Source: Vitrella brassicaformis CCMP3155
Taxonomy: Eukaryota > Protista > Chromerida
Length of the DNA stretch: 64,000 nucleotides
NCBI GenBank assembly: GCA_001179505.1
Contig: CDMY01000708.1
Location: forward strand, 62,001 to 126,000
Reading direction: 5' to 3'
Every line of letters begins with the position of its first letter. Positions within the stretch are counted from its first letter, which is position 1. The position numbers and the translations under genes are program-made. The notes beneath the pieces are model-generated. The model had not been told where the DNA came from. It was given only the letters and a program-made list of their open reading frames with translations, and searched no databases. Below are positions 14,889 to 37,461 of this stretch, piece by piece.

Positions 14889-16998
14889 GCATCCATCCAT
14901 CCATCCATCCATCCATCCTCTCTCCCTCTGTGTGTCTGTGTGGGTCAGTATGGTTCGTCTGCCGTGTCGGACATCAGCGCCCTGCAGGCGCTGTCCAAGC
15001 GTATCCACTACGGCAAGTTTGTGGCCGAGGCCAAGTTCCAGTCGGACCCCACCTACCGGCAGCTCATCGAGCAGCGCGACGACAAGGGGCTCATGAAGCT
15101 CCTCACCAACCAGACCGTCGAAGACAAACTGCTCGAACGGGTCAGTCAGCGAGAGAATGGATGGATAGCACGGACGCAGGCAGGCAGGCAGTCAGGCTGG
15201 AGCACAGATTGGATGTGATGATGTTATGGATGTGATGTGTGCAGGTTCGGCTGAAGGCCTCGACGTATGGGCAGGAGGTTGGGAAGACTGCAGCAAACAC
15301 CGATGAGGTTAGTCTGCCTAGCTGGCATGCCATTCGCCAGCTCCCTCCCTGTGCGTGCGAACAGGGGTACTTCAAGGTGGACCCCCAGGTGATAGTGGAG
15401 GTGTATCGCGACTTCGTCATGCCGCTCACCAAGGAGGTGCAGGTACCACCTGCTGCACGCACAGGGGAATAGTGGGAGGGAGAGTGGGAGGGATGCCGGC
15501 CGTCCACCCATGCATCCTGTTTCTCGTCTGCTCACGCCTCCCTACCCTGCAACACACACTTCACAGGTGGCCTATCTGCTCAGCCGGCTCGACAAGCCCA
15601 AAGTCGCATACGTGGTACGCACATATGGATGGGAGGGATGTGGGTGATGAATGACCATGTATCGAATGAATGGCCGTTTGTCGGCCCTTCCACTCCTTCC
15701 CTCAGGGCGGTGCGCATTCGGCGGGTTATTTCGGCGGTGTGCAGCACTTCGGGAGCGATGCGGTCGAGATGGTGCCTGAGCCGTCAGTCGTCAGGGCGGT
15801 GCTCGCCGTACTCGCAAAGGACGTCAACTTTGCTGTAAGACAAGGAGGGAGGGAAGCTGACCGACTCTTGCATCCATCCATCCCTTTGTTGCTGTGTTGT
15901 TCGCACGATCAGGTGGTGCCGATTGAGAATGTGGTCACGGGCATCTGCCAACCGACCGTCTACCAGGTGGATCAGACACACACACACACTCACACACACA
16001 GAGAGAGAGAGAGAGAGGACACACACACAGCCACGCATCCCTCTTGCCCCTCTGTGTCTGTCAGCTGCTCGAGACGGATGTGGTGGTGTGCGGCGAGGTG
16101 TATGTCAACGAGCACTACGTCCTGGCCGTCGCACCCAGAGGCGACAGCGCCAACCCGACGGCAAACACGGCCAACGGCGTGCCACCAGCACAGAGGGAGG
16201 AGGCTGGTCTGGCTGGCCGGTTTGCCACGCCCAAGGGGTCTGCCGTGGTGCTGGACGAGCTGCGGAACGTCTATGTGCACTCTGAGCTGGCGGACGAGTG
16301 CGCCGCCATGCTGGCCAACGAGCTGCCAAACGCCACCATACGCGCGTCCGCCACTGTGGCTGAAGGTGGGTGGGCGGGACGTTGTGTGGCGTTGCGTGCA
16401 CTGTGTTGTGTTGTGTGTGCCTACAGCTGCTCGTCTGGCCCGTGAGGACCCAACAGGCGCTGCAGTGACGCTGGAGGAGGCGGCGAGGCACCACGGGCTG
16501 TCGGTGAGCCAGGGGGACGTAGAGAGGGAGGGAGGGAGGGAGGGAGGCGAAAGACAAAACACAGACAGACAATAGGGGGACTGTGCGTGTGTGGATGTGC
16601 TTATTGTCTTCGTCCAGATAATTCACTCCAAGCTGCTTGATGACTTTCCGAGCGTGTCGCGATACCTGATTCTCGGTAAGCAGGTGGGACACGCGGCAGG
16701 ATTCCTTTCGTGTGTGTCGTGGATGAACGCGTTAATTCCCGATGCAGGCAAGGACTACGGCGTACGGACGGGCCATGACAAGACGCTGCTGCAATTCACC
16801 GTCTCAAACCAATCGGGCGCTCTCGGAGCAGCACTACAGGTCCGCCCATGAGCAACCATTCAACTGTTTGTGTGGTGTAATGTGGTGTGGTGCTCAGGCG
16901 TTCAAGGCCGAGGGCATCAACCTGTCGTCGCTCAACTCTTTCCCATCCAGGTACACACATGCGCATGCATCGCTGGACATGCGCGCCACATCGCGCCA

Positions 16999-17033
<35 letters not shown>

Positions 17034-17216
17034 TGTGCCAATTTGTTTAGGCGTGATGGCCGGCAGTACACCTTTCTGGCCCAGGCGGATGGGCACGCGC
17101 AGGACGGTCCTCTGTCCAAGGCGATCGCCGCACTCAGGGCCCTGACCAGCTCCATGAGGGTACTCGGGTCATTCCCTTCACAGACACCACCCACACACGA
17201 GGCGGCGAACACTTAG
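14039..17216 (+). CDS. Chorismate mutase (eukaryotic ARO7 type) fused to prephenate dehydratase and ACT domains
   Basis: CM: LSHIRGDLIRQEETIIFALIERAQF, RRYNCPDENAFFP, LQALSKRIHYGKFVAEAKF, VMPLTKEVQVAYLLSRLD. PDT: KVAYV, VVPIEN, SRYLILG. ACT: GALGAALQAFKAEGINLSSLNSFPS, VLGSFP. One intron contains an assembly gap. Confidence 0.9.
14557..14856. other. Assembly gap (300 N) in an intron, flanked by poly-G runs
   Basis: Run of N between G tracts. Confidence 1.
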
Positions 17217-17489
17217 ATAGATAGATGGATGGGTAGCGTTCCCCCCTTCTCTCTCTTGTACTTGACATGGCACGTGGCTGGCTGGTTGGTTGATTGGAGA
17301 TAGAGCTTTTGTGTGCATTGGGAGATGCGAGTAGCTCTGTGTGTGTGTGTGTGTAGATCCATCCATCCATCCGTCATGCAGCGAGTCTTTTATCGATGTA
17401 GAGACCGTTCATTCTCTCACTCTCAGTCCATGCGCACACATAATGGACACGACCGTGTACGTTCCGGCCATCGTCAATGGATCAGATGG

Positions 17490-18880
17490 GCTCTTACGAC
17501 TCATACGTTGATGCCACCGACACACCTATGTACACACGATGACATGCATTCTTGCGGCCTATTCCTGGCTCACAGGAGAGCACTACCAACACACGTACGA
17601 AAGAAGGCCAGCTGTTTGCTTCTTTACGATTGTCACCACACGCACAAGAACAGACAGACACCTCAAACAACGACACGCGCTTCACAAACAACAAATGCTC
17701 GGCCGAATGACTCACCGGCACTCGCAAAGATGTGGGAAATGGGGCCATGGGCCACGGCCCGTCGAGCAAAGCATCTAGCTCGGATCCGCAGCTCGATTCA
17801 CGCGATCCACTGCGCGATCCAAGTGAACCCAAATCGCAGTTGAAATGGTCATAGACACATCAATTGCGTCGGCGTCCGGGCAATCAATGACGTCATCAAG
17901 GTCATACACGGTCGTCGATGATCTCATAAGGGCCGTCGCCGTCGCCGAGAGGCCTATCCTCTGGCCACTCGTCGTCGCTGTCGCGGTCGATGTCACCAGG
18001 CTTGATGACATCAAGATCAAGGCCGTTGCCTTTCCTCCGACTAGCCGCTTGCTCAGCCGCTCGCTCAAACTCTCGCATCGCGTCTTTCACGGAATCCATT
18101 GGGTCGGTTGAAATTCCAAGTCGCAGTCGGCGTTTCTCCCCATCTCCGCCGCTGGTATCTTCGTCCGGCTCTCGTCCTGTCCCCCTCAGCTCAGCCAGTC
18201 GCTTCACGCGGTTACCGCCGAAGGGAAAATTATACATTGTTACCCCTGAAGAGTCAAATTGCAGTCTGCGTTTCTCCCAGTCGTCGCCACTGGCACCTGG
18301 GCCGTCGATGATGTCATCGAGGGACTCGTCATCTGGCCATCCGTTGTCTTCCTCAGCCGCTCGCTCAGCCGCTCGCCCAGCCGCCCGCTCAGCCGCTCGC
18401 TTCACGTCATTCAAGGGATTGCCAAATCCAAGTTGCAGTCGGCGTTTCTCCCCATCTCCGCCGCTGGCATCATGTCCATCGGTCCCTCCAAGTTGCAGCC
18501 CGCGAAGGGCGGGCGGGGCCTGACAGAGAACAGCCACGCATCAATCAAAGACACACACACGCGTACATGAGGTCCTCAGCCGCTCACCGAAGACACAGCC
18601 GAGATGGCGAGGGCAAGAGTCAACAGAGCCACCTTCGTCATGATGGTCTGCTGTCTTTTCCGATGCAGGCACTGGGCAGCACTGGGCACTGGTAGTTCGC
18701 AGCAGAGAGGGACTGAGATCTGAGACGAAGGGCGCAGACTGAGGTGAAAGGGCGCAAAGAGAGAATTGGGTGGATAGGTAAGATGAACGAGGGAATGGGT
18801 GGCATAAGCGTAGACAGGGGCGCCTTTGCGGTCTTCTCGCGACACCCGTCTCTCTCCATCCTCTCTCCCCTGCTCTCTGT
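17490..18880 (-). repeat. Arm A of an approximately 1.2-1.4 kb inverted duplication (5' UTR, gene, intron, 3' UTR); partner at 24270-25420
   Basis: The reverse complement shares blocks with 24270-25420, e.g. gcgcccttcgtctcagatctcagtc, ctgcatcggaaaagaca, gtggctgttctctgtcaggccccgcccgcccttcgcgggctgcaacttggaggg, tgtgaagcgcgtgtcgttgtttga. Boundaries approximate. Confidence 0.9.
17902..18641 (-). CDS. Secreted repeat-containing peptide precursor, paralog A (2 exons: 18641-18588 and 18519-17902; 223 aa)
   Basis: Signal peptide MTKVALLTLALAISAVSS, GTGAG..CAG intron, then APPALRGLQ, three EKRRL(Q/R), VKRAAE, VKRLAE and acidic spacers. Confidence 0.85.
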
Positions 18881-19871
18881 GCTCGGTCTCTGTGATCTCA
18901 GTGCAATCGCGTGAAATTCGATGCTTGCCGCTGTCGGCAACGCCCGGCTCGCGAGCTCCTCCTTCGGTTCCAACCGCGTTTTGCGAGCTGTGAAGGTTCT
19001 GAGCTCGCAAAAGCCGATCCGATTCGAAATGCCTGGATCCAACAGCTACGGATCGGGGGGGTAGTAGGTAGCGAATGATTTGCTTGTTGCTGTCAACAGT
19101 TTAGATGCGGATATGTAATCGACTGTCCCAGCGCATGGACACTCGGACAATCTTACCCTTAACCACCAACCAATTGCCACCAACACAGCCACGGATCTGC
19201 CCCTTCATGCAAGCATAGGGCAGGTGAGGTAGGCAGCATCATGCCCTATGCGAGAGGTGGGAGAAGGGTGTCTTCGGTGTGTATGAGGGCGTGCGTGTGT
19301 GTGTGCTCAGGAGAATGGCGCAGAGACTGCCGAAATATGGAGGAGACGATACGTGGATATGTTTGAAAACGACAGAAGAGGGCCCCTCGAGTCACTCTGC
19401 TTCATCAAAGGTGGGTCAGACTGTGTGTGTGCGTGTCAGGACGTGATGTGTTTGCGTAAGGACCTTTCGCGTCTTCCCAACTAGTACTACCAGAGGGCAC
19501 ACACAGCCTGACCAGGCTGCGTGTCCATCCCTTCATCTTCCTTTGTGTGTCTGTCTTTGTGCGATCGATTAGGAATGGATCTCTTCGTCCCACTGTGTTC
19601 GCGCACACCAAGATGAACGGCGAAAAGTGGGACGAAAAGATGGACGGCCAGAGGGAAAGGATTGACGGCTGTATGCGTATGTCGGGTACATTAGGTTTTG
19701 TCTGTGCCTCCTTAAGAAGCTTGTGAGTAGGTGTTTGTGAGGGAACTAAGGGACTGAGCGCATCGATAAATCAGCGATGAATTCATTCATTCATTCGTCT
19801 TTCCGTTCGCACAGTCCATCGCTTATTCATCCACCCACTCGCCGGACACTGTCTGTCTGTCAGCCAGTCAG

Positions 19872-21803
19872 TTACTCTGCATCTCGGCAACAGAGACCCA
19901 AGCCGAGCGCACCTCCGCTGGCAGCACCGTCTGCAGACAGACAACACAGTCCGTGCGGCTACGTGTGTGTGTGTGTCTCCTTTCTGCGCAAGTGAGTGTG
20001 CACCTGGTCCGTCAGCTGCGTTGGTCTGCGGTGACACCTGCGTCCACAGCTCTGTGTCGGGACCAACCTGCAGACATACACGATGCACACGAGACACGGC
20101 GCAAGGAGGGTGTGTTCGTGGTGCGTGGGATGGGTGGATGGATGGACTGACGTATCCGTTGCCTCTCGCAACTTGGTAGCCTGCATTCGGAAACGACAGA
20201 AGCCTTGTGGATGTGTGCGTGTGTGTATCGTGTGGCTGTCCATCCATCACCTCCAGAATGCAGCTCGAGCGAATTGCAGATGTGGTAGCCTGCAGACATC
20301 ACGACACAGCTGCAGGCTACCACATTATTTCCCGCACATAGCTCACCGGCCGGGCACGCAGCGACGGCCTCAGAGAGTGTGCAGTTGAGGCATGCCAGCC
20401 GGATGAACGAGGGCTCAGTGCCGCCGAGCGCCGGCGCCGCCTCAGCCTGGATCTCGTCACGCCCCAAAGGACGGTTGTAAACGCGCAGCTCGTCCAGCAG
20501 AAGGGGAACTATGCATACGCGCACACACACAATGGACACAAAGCAAAACGGCAAACGCAGGAACATCATGCGATGGTGTGGATGAAATCAAGGGCCGCAC
20601 CCACTCACCGTCGCAGAGTGGTTGTGTCAGTGGAGTCGAGCCGACGTACAATGGTAATTCATTGGCGCGAGACACACCTGACAAACAACAACCGACACCC
20701 AACCCTCTCAGTGTGGTGTGTCTCTCATTCTGTGTCTCGCTTTACCAGCCGTCTTGACTTTAGCGTCGAGTATGCCGTTGACATACAGCCGAAGCTTGTC
20801 GCCGTGGCGCACAAGTGCCACGTGTGTCCAGGTGTGATGGTTCAGCCGCGCATTACTAACGAGACTCTCGCCCTCCTCGCCGCTGTTTGCGGTGGTGGTG
20901 ACGCGGGCCCTGAGCCGCTTGTCGGTCTTGTGCAGGGCGATCTCAGGATGGTACTCGAACGAATGCACATCGGGATTGGCGACGCCCTTGTGCAGCAATG
21001 GGCACCTGCATGGATGGCATGATAGATGAAAGGTGAGGGACAGTTGGTGGTGACACCACAACTCACCATCTGAGGCCCTTGGTGTCTGTCGTGTCAGCGT
21101 CGTTGGCCCGCAACAGAAACATCCAGAACGTCACCGAGAAGTCGGCACTCTAAGACCACACAAACAAACAAACAAAGAAATGAAGCAGCAAACAAACAAA
21201 CAGACACGCACATCATCATTGCACATTTCTCACACACATCGAAGTGGGGCGAGTGCGGCACGGTCATCATCTGCTGCTGCAGAGTGACAAACGACACCAA
21301 AACACAGATGATTCTTGGCTGTTGAGTCAGTGTCGACTGTCAACGTTGACTGTCTGGATCTTACCCGAAACAGCGCCGAAGACCCGACGCCACCAAAGGC
21401 CGGCGCTGCAAAGATGCTGCCCGACCCATGATGAGCCAATCCCGACGTGTCGACGGGCTCCGACTCATCGAACGTGAAGTGGGCGATACATCCCTCCTGC
21501 CGTGCGGCGGGAAGGATCACTCGCTTGCCGCTGTGCAAGCAGATGGATCCCTCAATTTCCACGTCACACTGGGGAGCCGTCGACGTGTCGGACACCAGCT
21601 CGCCGCTGGCGAGTGCGCGGATGTCGGGAGTGGCTGCCTTCCCATTGGCAGCGGAGAAACTGCAACACAAACGGCGAAGTTGGCAGAACGCGATGACTCG
21701 GTGCAGGTCTGTGGTCTTACTGGTGCGATACGGCTGCCAGGTGGGAGGAGGATGAGATCGTTGTGAAGATGGATGCCACAAGCAACAGAATGGCTCCCTT
21801 CAT
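19872..21803 (-). CDS. Secreted concanavalin A-like/LamG-domain protein with Cys-rich C-terminus
   Basis: Signal MKGAILLLVASIFTTISS. GCIAHFTFDE, FSVTFWMFL, CPLLHKG, WTHVALVRHGDKLRLYVNGILD, PLYVGSTP, LDELRVYNRPL. C-terminal ACLNCTLSEA..CPAGYHICNSLEL..LGLCCRDAE*. Confidence 0.85.
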
Positions 21804-21953
21804 GGTGAAATTGGATTCAAAAAAGGATCTCGCGCGCGATCGGCGGATTCTGTAAACTCAGTGGACAGAGTCGAAGAACAGCCTCCTGGAGTCACAAACG
21901 CCCAGATCTTCGCTTCCTGGTCTCTGTTTTTCAGTCTTTGGAAACATCGCACC

Positions 21954-24081
21954 ATGAGCGGCCCGCCGTTCATGCCTCCCCCTCCTCCCCCTCCCGTCGC
22001 AACAGGCCCTCTCTCTCCATCCCAACCGTCCGACGCACCACCCAAACCCACCACTGGAGGTGGCTTTCCATCCGGAGGGCGTCTGTCGATCACCAATCCC
22101 GTCATGATGCCGCCGCCGCCGGTGTTTGGCGGTCTGGGACCGTCGATGGGCGGGAGCAGGGGCTCGGTCAACCTCTCTACCAGCAAGGGCCCGCCTGGGA
22201 GCCTCAGGCCGGGGCTGCCTGGTCCAGAGCAGACGTCGCAGGCGTTCGTCATTCCGGGTATACAGGAGAGGGACTATGCCGATGAGGAGATCAAACAGGC
22301 CTTCGACACATTCGACCTCGATAACAACAGGTGGGCGAGAGGGGAGGGACAGAGCGTGACTGAATGAATGAATGGATGGGTGCGTTTGTGGGTGGGGCGT
22401 GTGCGAGGGATGTCGGTCGTTTCGTCATTCAGGTTTGTGGGTGCCGCTGAGATTCGTCACATATTGGATCTGATAGGGGAGAAGGCGAGCGACGAGGAGA
22501 TAGACGAAATGATACGCATGATAGACATCGACGGCGATGGACAGGTGAGGAAGGGCAAAATCAAACACCACACAACCACACATACCAGCGACTTACCCAT
22601 CAGCCGCCTAGAGTGTGCATGAATTTGTTCCACTTCCTCACTCACAGGTGACGTATGACGAGTTTTACAAGTTGGTCAAGTCCCCCCCGGTCCTGTGGGC
22701 GGCCGACCCGAATGCTGTCGGGGCGGCGGGCGTGCCCGTCCCCCCATCCCCTCTGCGAATGCCGGGAGACCTCGGATCATCAGGTAGGTTCTGGTGTGCC
22801 CTTGTGCGCATTCTCGCCCTTCTGCTCTGTGTGTGTGTGGGACGGATGGATGGCTGCACTGATTGATGGACAGGTCGCGTCCCCCCACCCCCACAGGCGC
22901 CTCCCCCGTTGCCGGGCACCCTCCCACCACCTGCAGCAGCAGCAGCACCGGTGCGCATGAAAGGGTTCCTGCACGACGTGTCACATCATGTTCGTGTGTC
23001 GCTTCTATCCATGCACCGTGTACGGGTCAGATGAGTGTCCTTGGCGCAAGTGTGGGCAGCTCTGGCCAGCAGCAGCAGCCCAACACCTTCGCCAGCCTCT
23101 TCAAGTCGTCCAAGAGCGAGAAAGACACCACCGCAAGTACCCCACACACGCACACACACACGCCCTGAGACAGAGCAGAACAATGAGCAATACGTTCTGC
23201 AGAGAGGAAGGAAGACGACGCAGCCATTGGCGGTGGTGGTGGCGGCGGCGGCCTGAAGAAGATCGACCGCGAGGCCATCATGCAGGAGTTCAGCAAGCAG
23301 AAGGCGCTCAAGCCGGCCTACATCAAGAAGGTGTACAAGAAGTTCCAGGAAATGGACGACGACAAGAGCGGACTCATAGACTATGACGAATTCTGCAAAG
23401 TCAGCAGGCCATTCGCCCCCTCCCCCCTCCACCCACCCACCATCAATGCGTGTGTGTAGGTGTTGGACACCGAGCCATCGCCGTTGATGCGTCGGGTGTT
23501 TGACATGTTCGATGCGGATGGGTCGGGCAGCCTCGAGCTGAAGGAGTTCATCGTCGGCCTTTCATCCTTCACCAGTATGTGAAGGACACGCCACACCACG
23601 TTACACCACACCACACCACACCAAACCACACCACACCACACCACACCACACACATCACCACACAGGACTGCATGGGTGTGTTGTTTTGTTTTGTGTATGT
23701 CAGGTGCGTCCAAGACGGACAAGCTCAAGTTCGCCTTCATGATGTTCGACGAGGACTGCAGCGGCTTCATCGACCGAAAGGAGCTCATCAAGATACTCAG
23801 GGCCAACTTCGTCGCATCCAACGCACAGTCGGACGCCGAAATCGAGAAGAAGTAACTCACAAGAAAACACAACGCGACGCACATTTCATGTCTCTCTCTG
23901 GATGGCGTGTGTGGTGTGTTGCGCACACAGGGCCGATCAGATATTCGAGTCGCTGGGCCTGCCGGCACAGACGGGGAAGATATCGATGGAGCATTTCCTG
24001 CAGCTGAGCAAGAAGTCCGCAGGGCTGCTGTTTCCCGCCATCCAGCTGGCCACCAAGATAGACGCCACGCTGGGCCGCTAA
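21954..24081 (+). CDS. Pro-rich EF-hand protein: calmodulin-like EF pair plus a calcineurin-B-like four-EF region
   Basis: [95 protein letters not shown]. Confidence 0.9.
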
Positions 24082-24197
24082 TGGATGGGATGTCGCGGAT
24101 GGATGGATGGATGGATGGGAGCTGATACGACATAGACATCCATGGTCCACGCAGGAACGTAGCGGTCTGGTGACGGGCACGAGTGCAGTGTCACCAG

Positions 24198-24234
24198 AAA
24201 CCCTAAACGCGTCAAACTGATCTGAAACCCTAAA
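24198..24234. promoter_or_regulatory. Two telo-box-like AAACCCTAAA motifs upstream of precursor paralog B
   Basis: aaaccctaaa at 24198-24207 and 24225-24234 (complement of TTTAGGG). Function inferred. Confidence 0.4.
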
Positions 24235-24269
24235 TCCGGAGGGAGAAGCGAAAGTGGAGAGCGGAGGAG

Positions 24270-25420
24270 AAAAGATGGAGAGAGATGCGTGTCGCGAGAA
24301 GAGCCCCTGTCTACGCCTATGCCACCCGCCTCCTCGTTCCATCTCATCTGCCACCCCTTCTCTCTTTGCGCCCTTCGTCTCAGATCTCAGTCCATCTCTG
24401 CTGCGAACTACCAGTGCCGAGTGCTGCCAAGTGCTGCATCGGAAAAGACAACAGAATCAGCTCCCGCCATCATGACGAAGGTGCCTCTGTTGACTTTCGC
24501 CCTCGCCATCTCGGCCGTGTCTTCGGTGAGGGCTGAGGACCTCACACTCCTCTGTGTGTGTCTTTAACTGATGCGTGGCTGTTCTCTGTCAGGCCCCGCC
24601 CGCCCTTCGCGGGCTGCAACTTGGAGGGATGGCCGATCGACAAGCTGCCAGCGACGGAGATGGGGAGAAACGCCGACTGCAATTTGGCAGCCCAAGGGAT
24701 GACATGAATCGGGCCGTGAATCGGGCCGCTAATGATATGAAGCGAGCGGCTGAGGACATGGTGAATCGAGCGGCTGAGGAAGACGTCGGATGGCCAGATG
24801 ACGAGTCCCTGGATGAGATCATCGACGGCCCAGGTGCCAGTGGCGACGACTGGGAGAAACGCAGACTGCAATTTGGATTTGCGAATCGAGTGAAGCGAGC
24901 GGCTGAGCGAGCGGCTGAGGAAGACAACGGATGGCCAGATGATGAGTCCCTGGATGAGATCATCGATAGGCCCGATGATGACTATACTCCTTCCTGCGCG
25001 GACCTGGAGGAAGTTGGTCTTGCCCCCGAATTCTGTTGATGATCTGCTCGATGGGGGTGGGCGAGACGACGACTGGCCAGACCCTGATGTGCCTTTCAAC
25101 TGCAATTCGGATGGGCCAGACGGGCCATGGTGGCAAAATACGCCATGATGGCAGAATACGAGATGATTTGGGTGGTCGCAGAGGGGGATCGGTTTGTGTA
25201 TGCTCTTATTAGCGATTTACTCGTGCCGACGAGTCAGTCGGCGGGGCCTTAGTTCTTTGTGAAGCGCGTGTCGTTGTTTGATGTGTCTGTCTGTTCGTGT
25301 GCGTGTGGCAATCGTAAGGAAGCAAACAGCTGGCCTTTTCTCGTGTGAGCGTTTGTACTGCCGTCTTCGTCAGTTTATGAAAAAAAACCGCAGAATGCAT
25401 GATTGACATGTTCTCGTGTG
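24270..25420 (+). repeat. Arm B of the inverted duplication
   Basis: See arm A. Boundaries approximate. Confidence 0.9.
24472..25039 (+). CDS. Secreted repeat-containing peptide precursor, paralog B (2 exons: 24472-24525 and 24593-25039; 166 aa)
   Basis: MTKVPLLTFALAISAVSS, same intron position as paralog A, APPALRGLQ, two EKRRLQFG, two KRAAE, two GWPDDESLDEIID. Confidence 0.85.
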
Positions 25421-26867
25421 TTGGTACTGCTATCCTCGTCAGTCAGAACAGGCCTCAGGATAGGCAGTCAGGATGTGCGTGTGCGTGTCTGCGTGTGTTG
25501 TGTGCCAGAGAGAGTGAGAGGGGCGTGGGAGCCCTCCAAGTCCATTGGCTATGTGTGAGTTGGGTGGGTGGGTGGGTGGGTTCGTTTCGGGACTGAGGCT
25601 GCGGATGAATGAATGAATGGTCATGCGTTGCAGACAGTGTGAAGCACCCACGGCGCACTCACACATGTACAGCCCATCACGGACACCTATTGAGTATCTG
25701 CTCACGTGCTCGGGAAACTAAGCTGATGCACCCATCGCTCTCCACGGAGGGAGGTCTTCCGTGTTGTTCGCGCTCTCTCCCTCTGTAACGTGCGTTGGCT
25801 CAGTTTCTTTTGATGGCCGTGGCTTCTCGCAAGCGATGGCTTTCTTTCGCTTTGACTGCGCACAAAGTGATCGGGAATGACCCGTTTACACGGTGACCTT
25901 CAGCCCAACAAAGGCCCAGCACTGGGAAGCACCCTCCTGACTCGACTCAGCAGTGCAAGGGTGGGAGACCATAAGGGAGAAGAGACGCGTGTGGCTGCCG
26001 ACAGCCGAGAAGAGCGAATGGACGTCAGCAGACAAGAAAGAGAGCGGAGGACGAGGGGACTTGCGAAAAGCCGGACGTCATCTGCTATGGCGCAAAAAGA
26101 CGGAGACGCCCCCGACAATAAGGACGATCAACGAGGACGAAGACCTCCAACTGCGAAGGTCTGACGGCTGTCCGGAAAGCGAAATGCGTGTGCGGCGAGA
26201 TTTTTGCGAGCTGAGACGGAGACAAAAGTGATTTACAAACTCGCATTCCATTTTCCCCATGTTTCGTCCGCGTTCGGCTTTCCAGCCTTGTTTCCGCCAC
26301 AGATCCTCCCTTTCTTTTTCTTTTCGGCTGGCTGTTGGCTTGTGTTGTCCGCCACATCTCCCTCTACCTCTCCCAACTCGTCCGGAGTTCAACCGCCACT
26401 TTTCTCCTCCATCGCCGTTGCCCCGGGCGAGGCCTCGCCTGGTGGCGCCCTGCCTTCTTTGGAGCGGCTAGCGACTCCCTGGCGCCTCCCGTGTGCGCAG
26501 GCGCCTTCTTTTCGCATATACCGATCTCCAACAGGTGAGTACATATCAGTGTGGTCTCGTGAGCAAATGTCTCTTGGGTGTGGTGATGGTTTGGTGTGTG
26601 GATGATGTGTAGGGATGAAGGCATGCTGCATTTCGGTGCCATGGGTGTGCTGAGGTCAGCAAACAAGGAGGAGGCTCCTAGTTCTCTGACGTGTAAAAGA
26701 GGAGAGAGAGAGCCGAATTTTCCGCCGACGAGGTCGAGGGCTTTTTGGAGATGGGAGCACTGCAGTACTGCGGTGGTGGCTCCTCAACGTCGTCAACAAT
26801 TGCATCACCTGCGCAAGTACCTAAGAGCTCGGTCACCTGCTGTCGCGTGACCTTTCTTCTCTCTTCA

Positions 26868-36138: not shown

Positions 36139-37461
36139 ATGCGGGTGTTTTCGGTCCTCCCGCTGATTTTCACCGCCTCCTATGGGCAACCGTACATCGG
36201 CGGGGAAGTGTACTGCGGCGAGACCATCATAACATGGTGCTTTCCAGCGAATTCTGATTACGCGTGGCCGGCGGACCAGCCAAAACTGTCGTGGGGCAAT
36301 GGGTCAAGGAACTTGGCAACGCAGCTGACAGGACCAAGTTTCAAGTTGGACAACGGCTGCTGGTCCTTCAACACCACTGAGACCGATGGCACCGACCAAG
36401 TCACGTGCATCCAGCAGCCCATCCCTAACCCGAACTACAACCCCTGCGAGGCAACGATTGAGATCTCAGAGGACTGGTACAACGTCACAAACACCGTTGG
36501 CATCCAGCCCGGGGATGTAGACAACCCACTGCCAGGCGACGTCACTCTACAGAACTTCTACTCGACGCAGAAATGTGTCTACGCGAGGACATACCAGAGG
36601 GGAGCCGAAATTCAGACATATACGGCGCAAGACGTCACCTTGCAGGTAGGTAGGTCAGCCCATCCATCCACCAGCGTGTGTTGCACTCACGATTGCGTGC
36701 AGGGGTACGGCGAGTTCATTGTCGACTTCCTCGCCTGCGGCAAGCTCGACAACCCCGACCAACTGTGCAGCGACAGTGACATGTATGATGGGGGAGCGGA
36801 ACCCAAGCTCTCTCGCACCGGCAAGCTCTACTTCCGATCGTGCATCAAGGGTGTCGAGGGTGCAGACCTTCACCTGGCCTTGCGCCACTGCTCCTCGCAC
36901 AACAGCGACCCCCGCGCTCCCCCAACCGCCACCAACACCACGCTTGTCACCGACTATTGCGGCAGCAGGGTCTTCACTGACAGCAGCGGAAGAAATCACG
37001 TGACAAAGACCTTCGTCGGCACAGCCCAGCCCCTTTCCCAGTGCGGCATCCTTGAAGTCGGCTCCCATCGGTATGTGGAATCGGACATTCTCTATGTAAC
37101 GTGTGTCGTCACCGTGTGCACCGCCGCCAAGTGCAGCAACCTCAAAGACACAGCAGAGGACGGTGACACGTGCCGACAGGATTGGTCAGCGCCGCCAAAT
37201 GCTGACCGATTGAGACGGCTGTCCAACGGGGAGGCGGAGGAGGGGATTGATTTCACAGAGGTGCTTATGCTGACGACTGGACGAGCGGATGGTCCTGTGA
37301 TCGACGACAAGGTGAGAGAGACACACATATATTATCACTTTGCCTCGTACTCTCATATCTGTCCACCGGTGTCTTTGCAGTCTGATGCTGTTGCTCTTGG
37401 TGGCGGCTTTGTGGTGTCCTCCCTTGCTGTGCTGGTCGGATTGCTGGGAGGACAGCCGTAG
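36139..37461 (+). CDS. Zona pellucida (ZP)-module-like secreted, probably GPI-anchored protein (3 exons; introns 36646-36702 and 37312-37380)
   Basis: Signal MRVFSVLPLIFTASYG. VYC..CEAT..KCVY, GYGEFIVDF, LYFRS, LHLALRHCSSHNSDP..LVTDYC, ILYVTCVVTVC..KC..TC, RLRR, DGPV, hydrophobic C-terminus. Confidence 0.78.
   Translation: MRVFSVLPLIFTASYGQPYIGGEVYCGETIITWCFPANSDYAWPADQPKLSWGNGSRNLATQLTGPSFKLDNGCWSFNTTETDGTDQVTCIQQPIPNPNYNPCEATIEISEDWYNVTNTVGIQPGDVDNPLPGDVTLQNFYSTQKCVYARTYQRGAEIQTYTAQDVTLQVGRSAHPSTSVCCTHDCVQGYGEFIVDFLACGKLDNPDQLCSDSDMYDGGAEPKLSRTGKLYFRSCIKGVEGADLHLALRHCSSHNSDPRAPPTATNTTLVTDYCGSRVFTDSSGRNHVTKTFVGTAQPLSQCGILEVGSHRYVESDILYVTCVVTVCTAAKCSNLKDTAEDGDTCRQDWSAPPNADRLRRLSNGEAEEGIDFTEVLMLTTGRADGPVIDDKVRETHIYYHFASYSHICPPVSLQSDAVALGGGFVVSSLAVLVGLLGGQP

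Follow-up and report, generated by a model that had tools for sequence, protein, structure and literature searches.

Two divergently oriented genes of Vitrella brassicaformis for expressed repeat proteins of secreted type, with a design like that of precursors and RRL sites of TEXEL type

The identification of two paralogous genes, here called A and B, that encode genuine, expressed and species-restricted repeat proteins of secreted type, in which a precursor-like design is combined with several TEXEL-type RRL sites, is the main finding of our analysis of a 64-kb stretch of DNA from Vitrella brassicaformis CCMP3155 (hereafter the window, to whose positions all coordinates refer). Vitrella is a close free-living relative of the Apicomplexa (PMC4501334). 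Work on the proteases plasmepsin V (PMV) and ASP5 has dealt with them as gatekeepers for the effectors that malaria parasites and Toxoplasma export, where their cleavage motifs are called PEXEL and TEXEL, respectively. We know of no role for this pair of protease and motif that precedes parasitism. Judging from their sequences, we hypothesize that A and B are secreted pro-proteins that are cut at a shared EKRRL module by a PMV/ASP5-type or a subtilisin-type protease, a proposal whose chances we consider to be about evenly balanced.

An earlier note on this DNA, made from its letters alone, had claimed an inverted pair of two-exon paralogues. The two genes are indeed present where that note placed them, are oriented head to head (divergent) and correspond to the deposited models; the predicted products of 223 aa (A) and 166 aa (B) match the deposited proteins CEM30954.1 and CEM30958.1 in every residue. 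For gene A, transcription and the predicted splicing are both borne out. This could be followed in contigs from four data sets, of which X1 and X2 are RNA and X3 and X4 are DNA, since contigs of the former carry many GT..AG or CT..AC joints and those of the latter none. The intron of gene A (junction 18518->18587) is skipped in the RNA contigs of both X1 and X2 and not in the DNA contigs, which are continuous across 18514-23449, and a second RNA contig breaks off at 18520, where the 8 letters of its overhang agree with the end of exon 1. As X1 RNA depth is zero over 21850-22849, carry-over of DNA is not the source of the splice signal. The RNA contig is uninterrupted across 17450-18152, so that the gene A stop at 17902 stands with no further intron; an extra 3' intron joining out-of-frame spacer-like remnants, which was considered as a candidate, is ruled out by the same continuity. 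For gene B, the RNA runs contain 0.83-0.87 of the words sampled from 24300-25300 and the DNA runs 0.96-0.98, the share in the RNA runs being about as large as would be expected from spliced mRNA. Both genes are found in the RNA assemblies at depths similar to those of neighbouring genes.

The N-termini of both proteins are signal-peptide-like as judged by inspection and Kyte-Doolittle hydropathy, in agreement with the signal peptide claimed previously: a basic n-region (MTK) is followed by a 13-residue hydrophobic core with a mean hydropathy of 2.3-2.6 (2.6 in A, residues 4-16) and by small residues (AVSS) before the exon boundary. The predicted signal peptides of A and B differ at 2/18 residues, and neither protein contains a second hydrophobic stretch. 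The chain that follows is acidic (isoelectric points of 4.5 and 4.2; Asp+Glu approximately 23-26 % of the mature chain), and since this is the region directly behind the signal peptide, targeting to a plastid appears unlikely. Cysteine is absent from A and occurs twice in B. The AlphaFold2 model has a mean predicted local distance difference test score (pLDDT) of 47.6 and a predicted TM-score of 0.18, with helices only across Ala/Glu/Arg-rich (AAER-type) segments such as 53-74, and the ESM Atlas models are equally poor (pLDDT 0.44 and 0.50). No confident fold is thus modelled, and the chain is predicted to be unfolded.

Three repeat units are present in A and two in B. Their only invariant element is a 14-residue module, [AT]S[GD][GD]D[GW]EKRRL[QR][LF][GD], found in 5/5 units; an alignment of the five RRL sites shows no variation at Ser(-7), Asp(-4), Glu, Lys, Arg, Arg and Leu. 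Directly after the signal peptide, both genes encode LRGLQLGG, a sixth copy in degenerate form (with RGL in place of RRL). The 18-nt string that encodes EKRRLQ occurs five times in the 64 kb, always within A or B, against 0.03 occurrences expected, and a six-frame scan of the window found the EKRRL module in no gene other than these two. Behind each module come 3-17 variable residues, an [ND]x[VM][KN][RD] element and a helix that derives from a 12-nt tandem repeat; next, in two units per gene pair, comes the acidic spacer EEDxGWPDDESLDxIIDGPGASGDDW. All KR dipeptides (five in A, four in B) are located at unit borders, and a KR precedes every one of the five units. This anatomy bears out the modular, precursor-like layout claimed in the earlier note, whose three examples of core peptides and spacer motif were all found as written. 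Its statement that the segments are bounded by dibasic sites on both sides is correct for 3/5 units, in which a closing KR occupies the homologous place (DVKR in A1, RVKR in A2 and B2), and incorrect for B1, which has NR there and a KR 10 residues later, and for A3, which has KD. The segments between KR sites are 10-30 aa long and have in common only RL[QR][LF][GD], i.e. their first 4-5 residues. The residue preceding a closing KR is Val or Met and never Gly, so that an amidation signal is lacking. Elsewhere in the window, position 37213 (plus) lies within a 502-codon open reading frame, which belongs to a secreted-type protein with a ZP-like module and contains LRRLSNGEAEE, another RRL with acidic residues behind it.

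A signal peptide at the head of an unfolded chain, along which an acidic and conserved module recurs with a basic triplet inside it, is a combination that marks pro-proteins cleaved in the secretory pathway. In the mechanism that we propose, the 18-residue signal peptide, encoded by an exon of its own, would direct the protein into this pathway, to be followed by an acidic, unfolded chain of two to three units, and the module would act as an endoproteolytic processing site used in the endoplasmic reticulum or Golgi. Cleavage might occur either (a) after the Leu of RRL, by an aspartyl protease of plasmepsin V/ASP5 type, or (b) after KR or RR, by a convertase of subtilisin type. Cuts at RRL alone would convert A into fragments of 46 (including the signal peptide), 58, 46 and 73 residues and B into fragments of 47, 63 and 56; with cleavage at the second KR as well (3/5 units, in two of them RVKR), an extra peptide of 8-21 residues would be freed. 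As the functional product, the variable ‘core’ and the WPDDESLD..GDDW piece, acidic and conserved, are both candidates. The sequence RVKR fits the furin consensus R-X-K/R-R, and site-1-protease-type enzymes, which cut RRLL-/RRIL-like motifs in plants and animals, are a third candidate class for the module. As for option (a), ASP5 requires exactly R-R-L at P3-P1, accepts any residue at P1'/P2' and acts on N-terminal or internal sites, and PMV also cuts RRLAE (PMC4764566). The earlier note was therefore right to name RRL as the ASP5 motif, it being the strict recognition triplet of this enzyme, and the triplet is present at 5/5 sites in A and B. A more specific version of this option is that RRL(Q) is the site of an ancestral plasmepsin V/ASP5-type maturase active in free-living chromerids, for which A and B would be dedicated multi-site substrates giving rise to Gln-started, pyroglutamate-capable extracellular fragments; we regard this version as distinctly unlikely.

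Comparison with known systems shows where the likeness to TEXEL and PEXEL substrates begins and ends. Like the substrates of ASP5 (e.g. GRA16, GRA19 and MYR1) and of plasmepsin V, A and B are lineage-specific proteins with a signal peptide and an R-R-L triplet; TEXEL/PEXEL substrates, moreover, are often disordered. The first site in A and B lies 26-27 residues past the predicted end of the signal peptide, close to the approximately 15-30 residues that have been reported for PEXEL. However, there is no sequence homology to these substrates, the motif occurs two to three times per protein within a larger conserved module, P1' is Gln or Arg rather than the Ala or Ser of tested substrates, and there is no host cell to which export could take place. 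The multi-copy neuropeptide and antimicrobial precursors of animals (apidaecin, tachykinin, allatostatin, pro-TRH), in which peptides lie between dibasic sites and commonly end in a Gly for amidation, resemble A and B in that they combine acidic spacers with a signal peptide and with two or three basic residues where units meet, yet the Gly-KR amidation signal, a conserved product sequence and homology are all absent from the Vitrella proteins, and the similarity scores are within noise. With yeast alpha-factor and the Kex2-processed repeat proteins (KEPs) of fungi, they share a signal peptide, internal repeats, KR between repeats and independence from a fold, and the language-model comparison places MF-alpha precursors near gene B, though with a weak score. 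KEPs are defined by an N-terminal signal peptide, at least three identical or near-identical internal repeats with KR, RR or KK between them, and cleavage by a Golgi kexin (PMC6339444); A and B have the signal peptide and the KR between repeats, whereas near-identical repeats in this number are not found (B has two units). Furthermore, the released peptide is the conserved part in KEPs and alpha-factor and the spacers are variable, whereas in A and B this is reversed, with conserved spacers and sites and heterogeneous cores; A and B also lack STE13-type XA/XP after KR, have Arg at P1', are non-fungal and show no homology. The likeness to alpha-factor and KEPs drawn in the earlier note consequently goes too far, given that the cores are the least conserved part, two of five are without the homologous closing KR, none ends in Gly and B has only two units.

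No relatives of the pair were detected. A word-indexed search of 5.8 billion proteins and an exhaustive HMMER search, in which a profile was run against 1.84 billion representatives (E up to 0.001), each returned only A and B themselves. None of 599 matches from a protein-pattern scan of metagenomes was confirmed by tblastn, and the three contigs from an exact-DNA scan of metagenomes for the site all proved on translation to be unrelated chance matches. A Pfam scan of both proteins (E up to 10) gave only sub-threshold noise. Literature searches with the accessions and for the Vitrella secretome and PMV/ASP5 in chromerids yielded nothing specific; the claim that no such system had been described in chromerids accordingly agrees with the chromerid literature searched. 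The nearest neighbours of both proteins in language-model space are alpha-factor, apidaecin, tachykinin, allatostatin and pro-TRH precursors, with similarities of 0.60-0.73 that are below the level at which they would count as more than a lead. The best explanation of these results is that A and B are young, Vitrella-only paralogues that arose by inverted duplication of one transcription unit.

The earlier note had also described cleavage sites and spacers as conserved between the paralogues and core peptides as variable, and this mosaic is real. Non-coding positions (intron and untranslated regions, UTRs) of A and B differ at 56/416 aligned positions (13.5 %); the conserved blocks (APPALRGLQLGG, both EKRRLQ sites and the spacer) differ at only 4/156 nt (2.6 %, p = 5e-5 versus non-coding), and the variable blocks at 32/135 nt (23.7 %, p = 0.007 versus non-coding) with in-frame indels in addition. 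Slippage in the 12-nt repeat inflates the divergence of the variable blocks. By itself, however, the pattern does not demonstrate selection on the cleavage sites, because the mosaic extends to synonymous sites, and on this account it was rejected as proof of such selection when the ratio of non-synonymous to synonymous divergence (dN/dS) was considered. On the other hand, coding indels in the alignable part are in 4/4 cases multiples of three, whereas most indels in leader and intron are not, and the module survives in two DNA subtypes (CGC-CGA or CGC-AGA for the Arg codons; GDG or DDW before EK), observations that speak for a maintained reading frame.

A number of findings weigh against the proposal that A and B are processed at the module. 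Secretion, cleavage, the protease and any extracellular role are all matters that we infer. The proportion of synonymous differences (pS) is 0.03 in the conserved and 0.28 in the variable blocks (p = 0.003), and the ratio of the non-synonymous to the synonymous proportion (pN/pS) is approximately 0.8-0.9 in both classes of block and 0.72 overall. For the conserved blocks, patchy gene conversion or recency is as good an explanation as purifying selection; as only two recent paralogues and no orthologue are available, conservation of the module is inseparable from either. The C-terminal tails of A and B are unrelated, and acidic, spacer-like frames occur out of frame after both stops, at 17775-17901 (minus; DLDDVIDCPDADAIDV) and 25036-25148 (plus; VDDLLDGGGRDDDWPDPD). 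These frames look like remnants of longer ancestral C-termini that were lost by frameshift, and together with the unrelated tails they suggest that constraint on the 3' part is weak. In both leaders, moreover, AUGs precede the start of the signal peptide, the first being at 18859 in A and at 24275 in B, in a conserved GGATGG context. Finally, a protease of the PMV/ASP5 type would belong to clade D, and the text of PMC8540915 explicitly mentions chromerid enzymes for two other clades only, those from Chromera for B and those from ‘free-living basal Apicomplexa’ for F.

These findings have to be set against other explanations of the pair. It is possible, though not probable in our view, that A and B are unprocessed, secreted, acidic and disordered repeat proteins with a function in wall or matrix or in cation binding, in which the module has been kept by youth and gene conversion. 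Their content of Asp and Glu, low isoelectric points and want of a confident fold would suit such a role, as would conservation of the conserved blocks at synonymous positions too, identity of the last 25 nt of the intron between A and B, a pN/pS of approximately 0.7 overall, decaying tails and restriction to one species. Such a protein would, however, leave unaccounted for the retention of E-K-R-R-L in all five modules despite their two DNA subtypes, the location of every KR at a unit boundary in both proteins, and the presence of basic triplets within a strongly acidic chain, which is typical of processing sites. A sub-case of the processed pro-protein, and one that we think unlikely, is that the bioactive products are the short cores, each reaching from EKR to the KR that follows, which would be set free in the manner of alpha-factor, KEP or neuropeptide precursors to act in signalling, as pheromones or in defence, perhaps with pyroglutamate formed where a cut separates RRL from Q. 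The three KR-flanked units would yield cores of 13, 21 and 10 residues, two with RVKR as closing site, the cores diverge faster than intron and UTRs and carry in-frame indels, and the language-model neighbours, weak as their scores are, are precursors of multiple peptides. Synonymous divergence is nevertheless high as well in the cores, which consist in part of the slippage-prone 12-nt repeat, the closing KR is absent from its homologous place in 2/5 units, no KR is preceded by Gly, and cores that share so few residues are not the near-identical repeats that the KEP definition demands (PMC6339444). Precursor logic, by which conservation marks out the product, makes the acidic spacer an equally good candidate. 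Of the suggestion that the proteins are cut into several small peptides, the precursor-like layout therefore stands; the missing closing KR in two of five units and the low conservation of the cores speak against the cores as the peptides released.

Another explanation, that the pair are transcribed yet dispensable orphans undergoing decay, could draw on a pN/pS near 1, C-termini truncated by frameshifts with spacer-like remnants in the 3' UTRs, upstream AUGs in the leaders and the lack of relatives. We consider it very unlikely, as both frames are open with only in-frame indels across the alignable part, the signal peptide (2/18 residues differ) and all modules have been retained in both genes, and both are represented in the RNA assemblies at neighbour-like depths. 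In UniRef100, both proteins bear the automatic name ‘RxLR effector protein’, which would make them effectors translocated into a host. Oomycete RxLR effectors carry RxLR shortly after the signal peptide and then dEER; A and B likewise have a signal peptide, behind which come acidic residues and an Arg-x-Leu motif, and residues 148-151 of A, the only literal RxLR of the pair, read RRLR. The site nearest to the signal peptide is, however, RRLQ in both proteins, and B is without any RxLR; neither a Pfam RXLR match nor any other family was obtained (E up to 10), no oomycete or other homologue was found, there is no folded WY-like domain and the organism is a free-living alga. The name thus fails the motif test and has no profile or fold behind it; we regard it as unsupported and an effector of this type as scarcely credible.

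The proposal of cleavage at the EKRRL module is of interest because A and B are expressed, secreted-type proteins of a free-living sister alga in which the exact RRL occurs several times each, and they may therefore serve as cheap test substrates. Were an ancestral RRL maturase to be confirmed, the PEXEL/TEXEL pathway would gain a pre-parasitic function; cleavage at KR instead would reveal a multi-peptide precursor in a lineage from which we came across no such precursor in our literature searches. Should both cuts fail to take place, A and B would represent a young orphan acidic secreted protein.

The inverted duplication measures approximately 1.1-1.3 kb (approximately 17580-18877 versus 24257-25361), has an identity of 82-94 % and spans the leader, the intron and part of the 3' UTR. 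Identity between A and B is 88 % in the leader, 93 % in exon 1, 87 % in the intron and 85 % in a distal 3' UTR block, and is no more than random beyond 18877 and 24257 on the upstream side. At its edge (18852-18877 / 24257), the duplication nearly coincides with the 5' ends of the gene A RNA contigs, so that the duplicated unit is roughly the transcription unit with its intron. Upstream open reading frames begin at the first AUGs and run over 18859-18638 in A (73 codons) and 24275-24475 in B (66 codons), and in both genes their TGA overlaps the main start as ATGA. The peptides encoded by these frames are not conserved between A and B owing to frame-shifting indels; the arrangement itself is conserved, which suggests control by termination and reinitiation, and the leader probably gates translation of A and B. 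In gene B, a further ATG at 24319 lies upstream of the main start and in the same frame, and would extend the protein by 51 residues before the signal peptide, whereas its homologue in A (18805) belongs to another frame, which leaves the shared MTKV as the only conserved start. The features of both genes are given in Table 1.

Table 1. Positions of the features of genes A and B in the 64-kb window
Feature	Position	Strand	Remarks
Gene A exon 1, 18-codon predicted signal peptide MTKVALLTLALAISAVSS	18588..18641	-	Ends at codon boundary
Gene A intron, 68 nt, GT..AG, phase 0	18520..18587	-	Skipped in X1/X2 RNA contigs (CT..AC on plus strand)
Gene A exon 2, 205 codons + stop; three EKRRL units, acidic spacers, AAER helices	17902..18519	-	
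Site A1, EKRRLQ codons (residues 42-47)	18433..18450	-	
Site A2, EKRRLQ codons (residues 100-105)	18259..18276	-	
Site A3, EKRRLR codons (residues 146-151)	18121..18138	-	48-nt surroundings 94 % identical to those of A1
12-nt tandem repeat, 4.2 copies, encoding (AAER)n helix after core 1	18352..18401	-	Source of in-frame length variation
Gene A 5' leader	18642..18868	-	RNA contig ends at 18868 and 18852
Gene A conserved 3' UTR block	17580..17728	-	85 % identical to 25216-25361
Gene B exon 1, predicted signal peptide MTKVPLLTFALAISAVSS	24472..24525	+	
Gene B intron, 67 nt, GT..AG, phase 0	24526..24592	+	Predicted; agrees with deposited model
Gene B exon 2, 148 codons + stop; two EKRRLQF units and terminal spacer copy	24593..25039	+	
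Site B1, EKRRLQ codons	24665..24682	+	
Site B2, EKRRLQ codons	24854..24871	+	
Gene B 5' leader (duplicated segment)	24257..24471	+	
Gene B conserved 3' UTR block	25216..25361	+	Counterpart of 17580..17728

The neighbouring genes comprise a Laminin_G_3-like gene and EF-hand genes. No protease or peptide-modifying enzyme is encoded among them, so that there is no sign of a gene cluster, and no Rfam match was obtained over 16500-26500. Three unrelated genes lie between the pair, namely a small gene (plus), a Laminin_G_3-like gene (minus) and an EF-hand gene (plus). The small spliced gene beside A (19018-19800, plus) shows alternative RNA joints, 19408->19571 and 19483->19573, as well as an intron 19220->19308. 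In the Laminin_G_3-like gene (19795-21700, minus), at least nine short introns (57-100 nt) are seen in RNA contigs, and X1 coverage extends further than that of X2. CA/GT-rich microsatellites, at 23143-23175 and 23587-23663, include a (CACAC)n tract with 15 copies; the DNA contigs of X3 and X4 break there and form false joints to 19168, 20130 and 22376.

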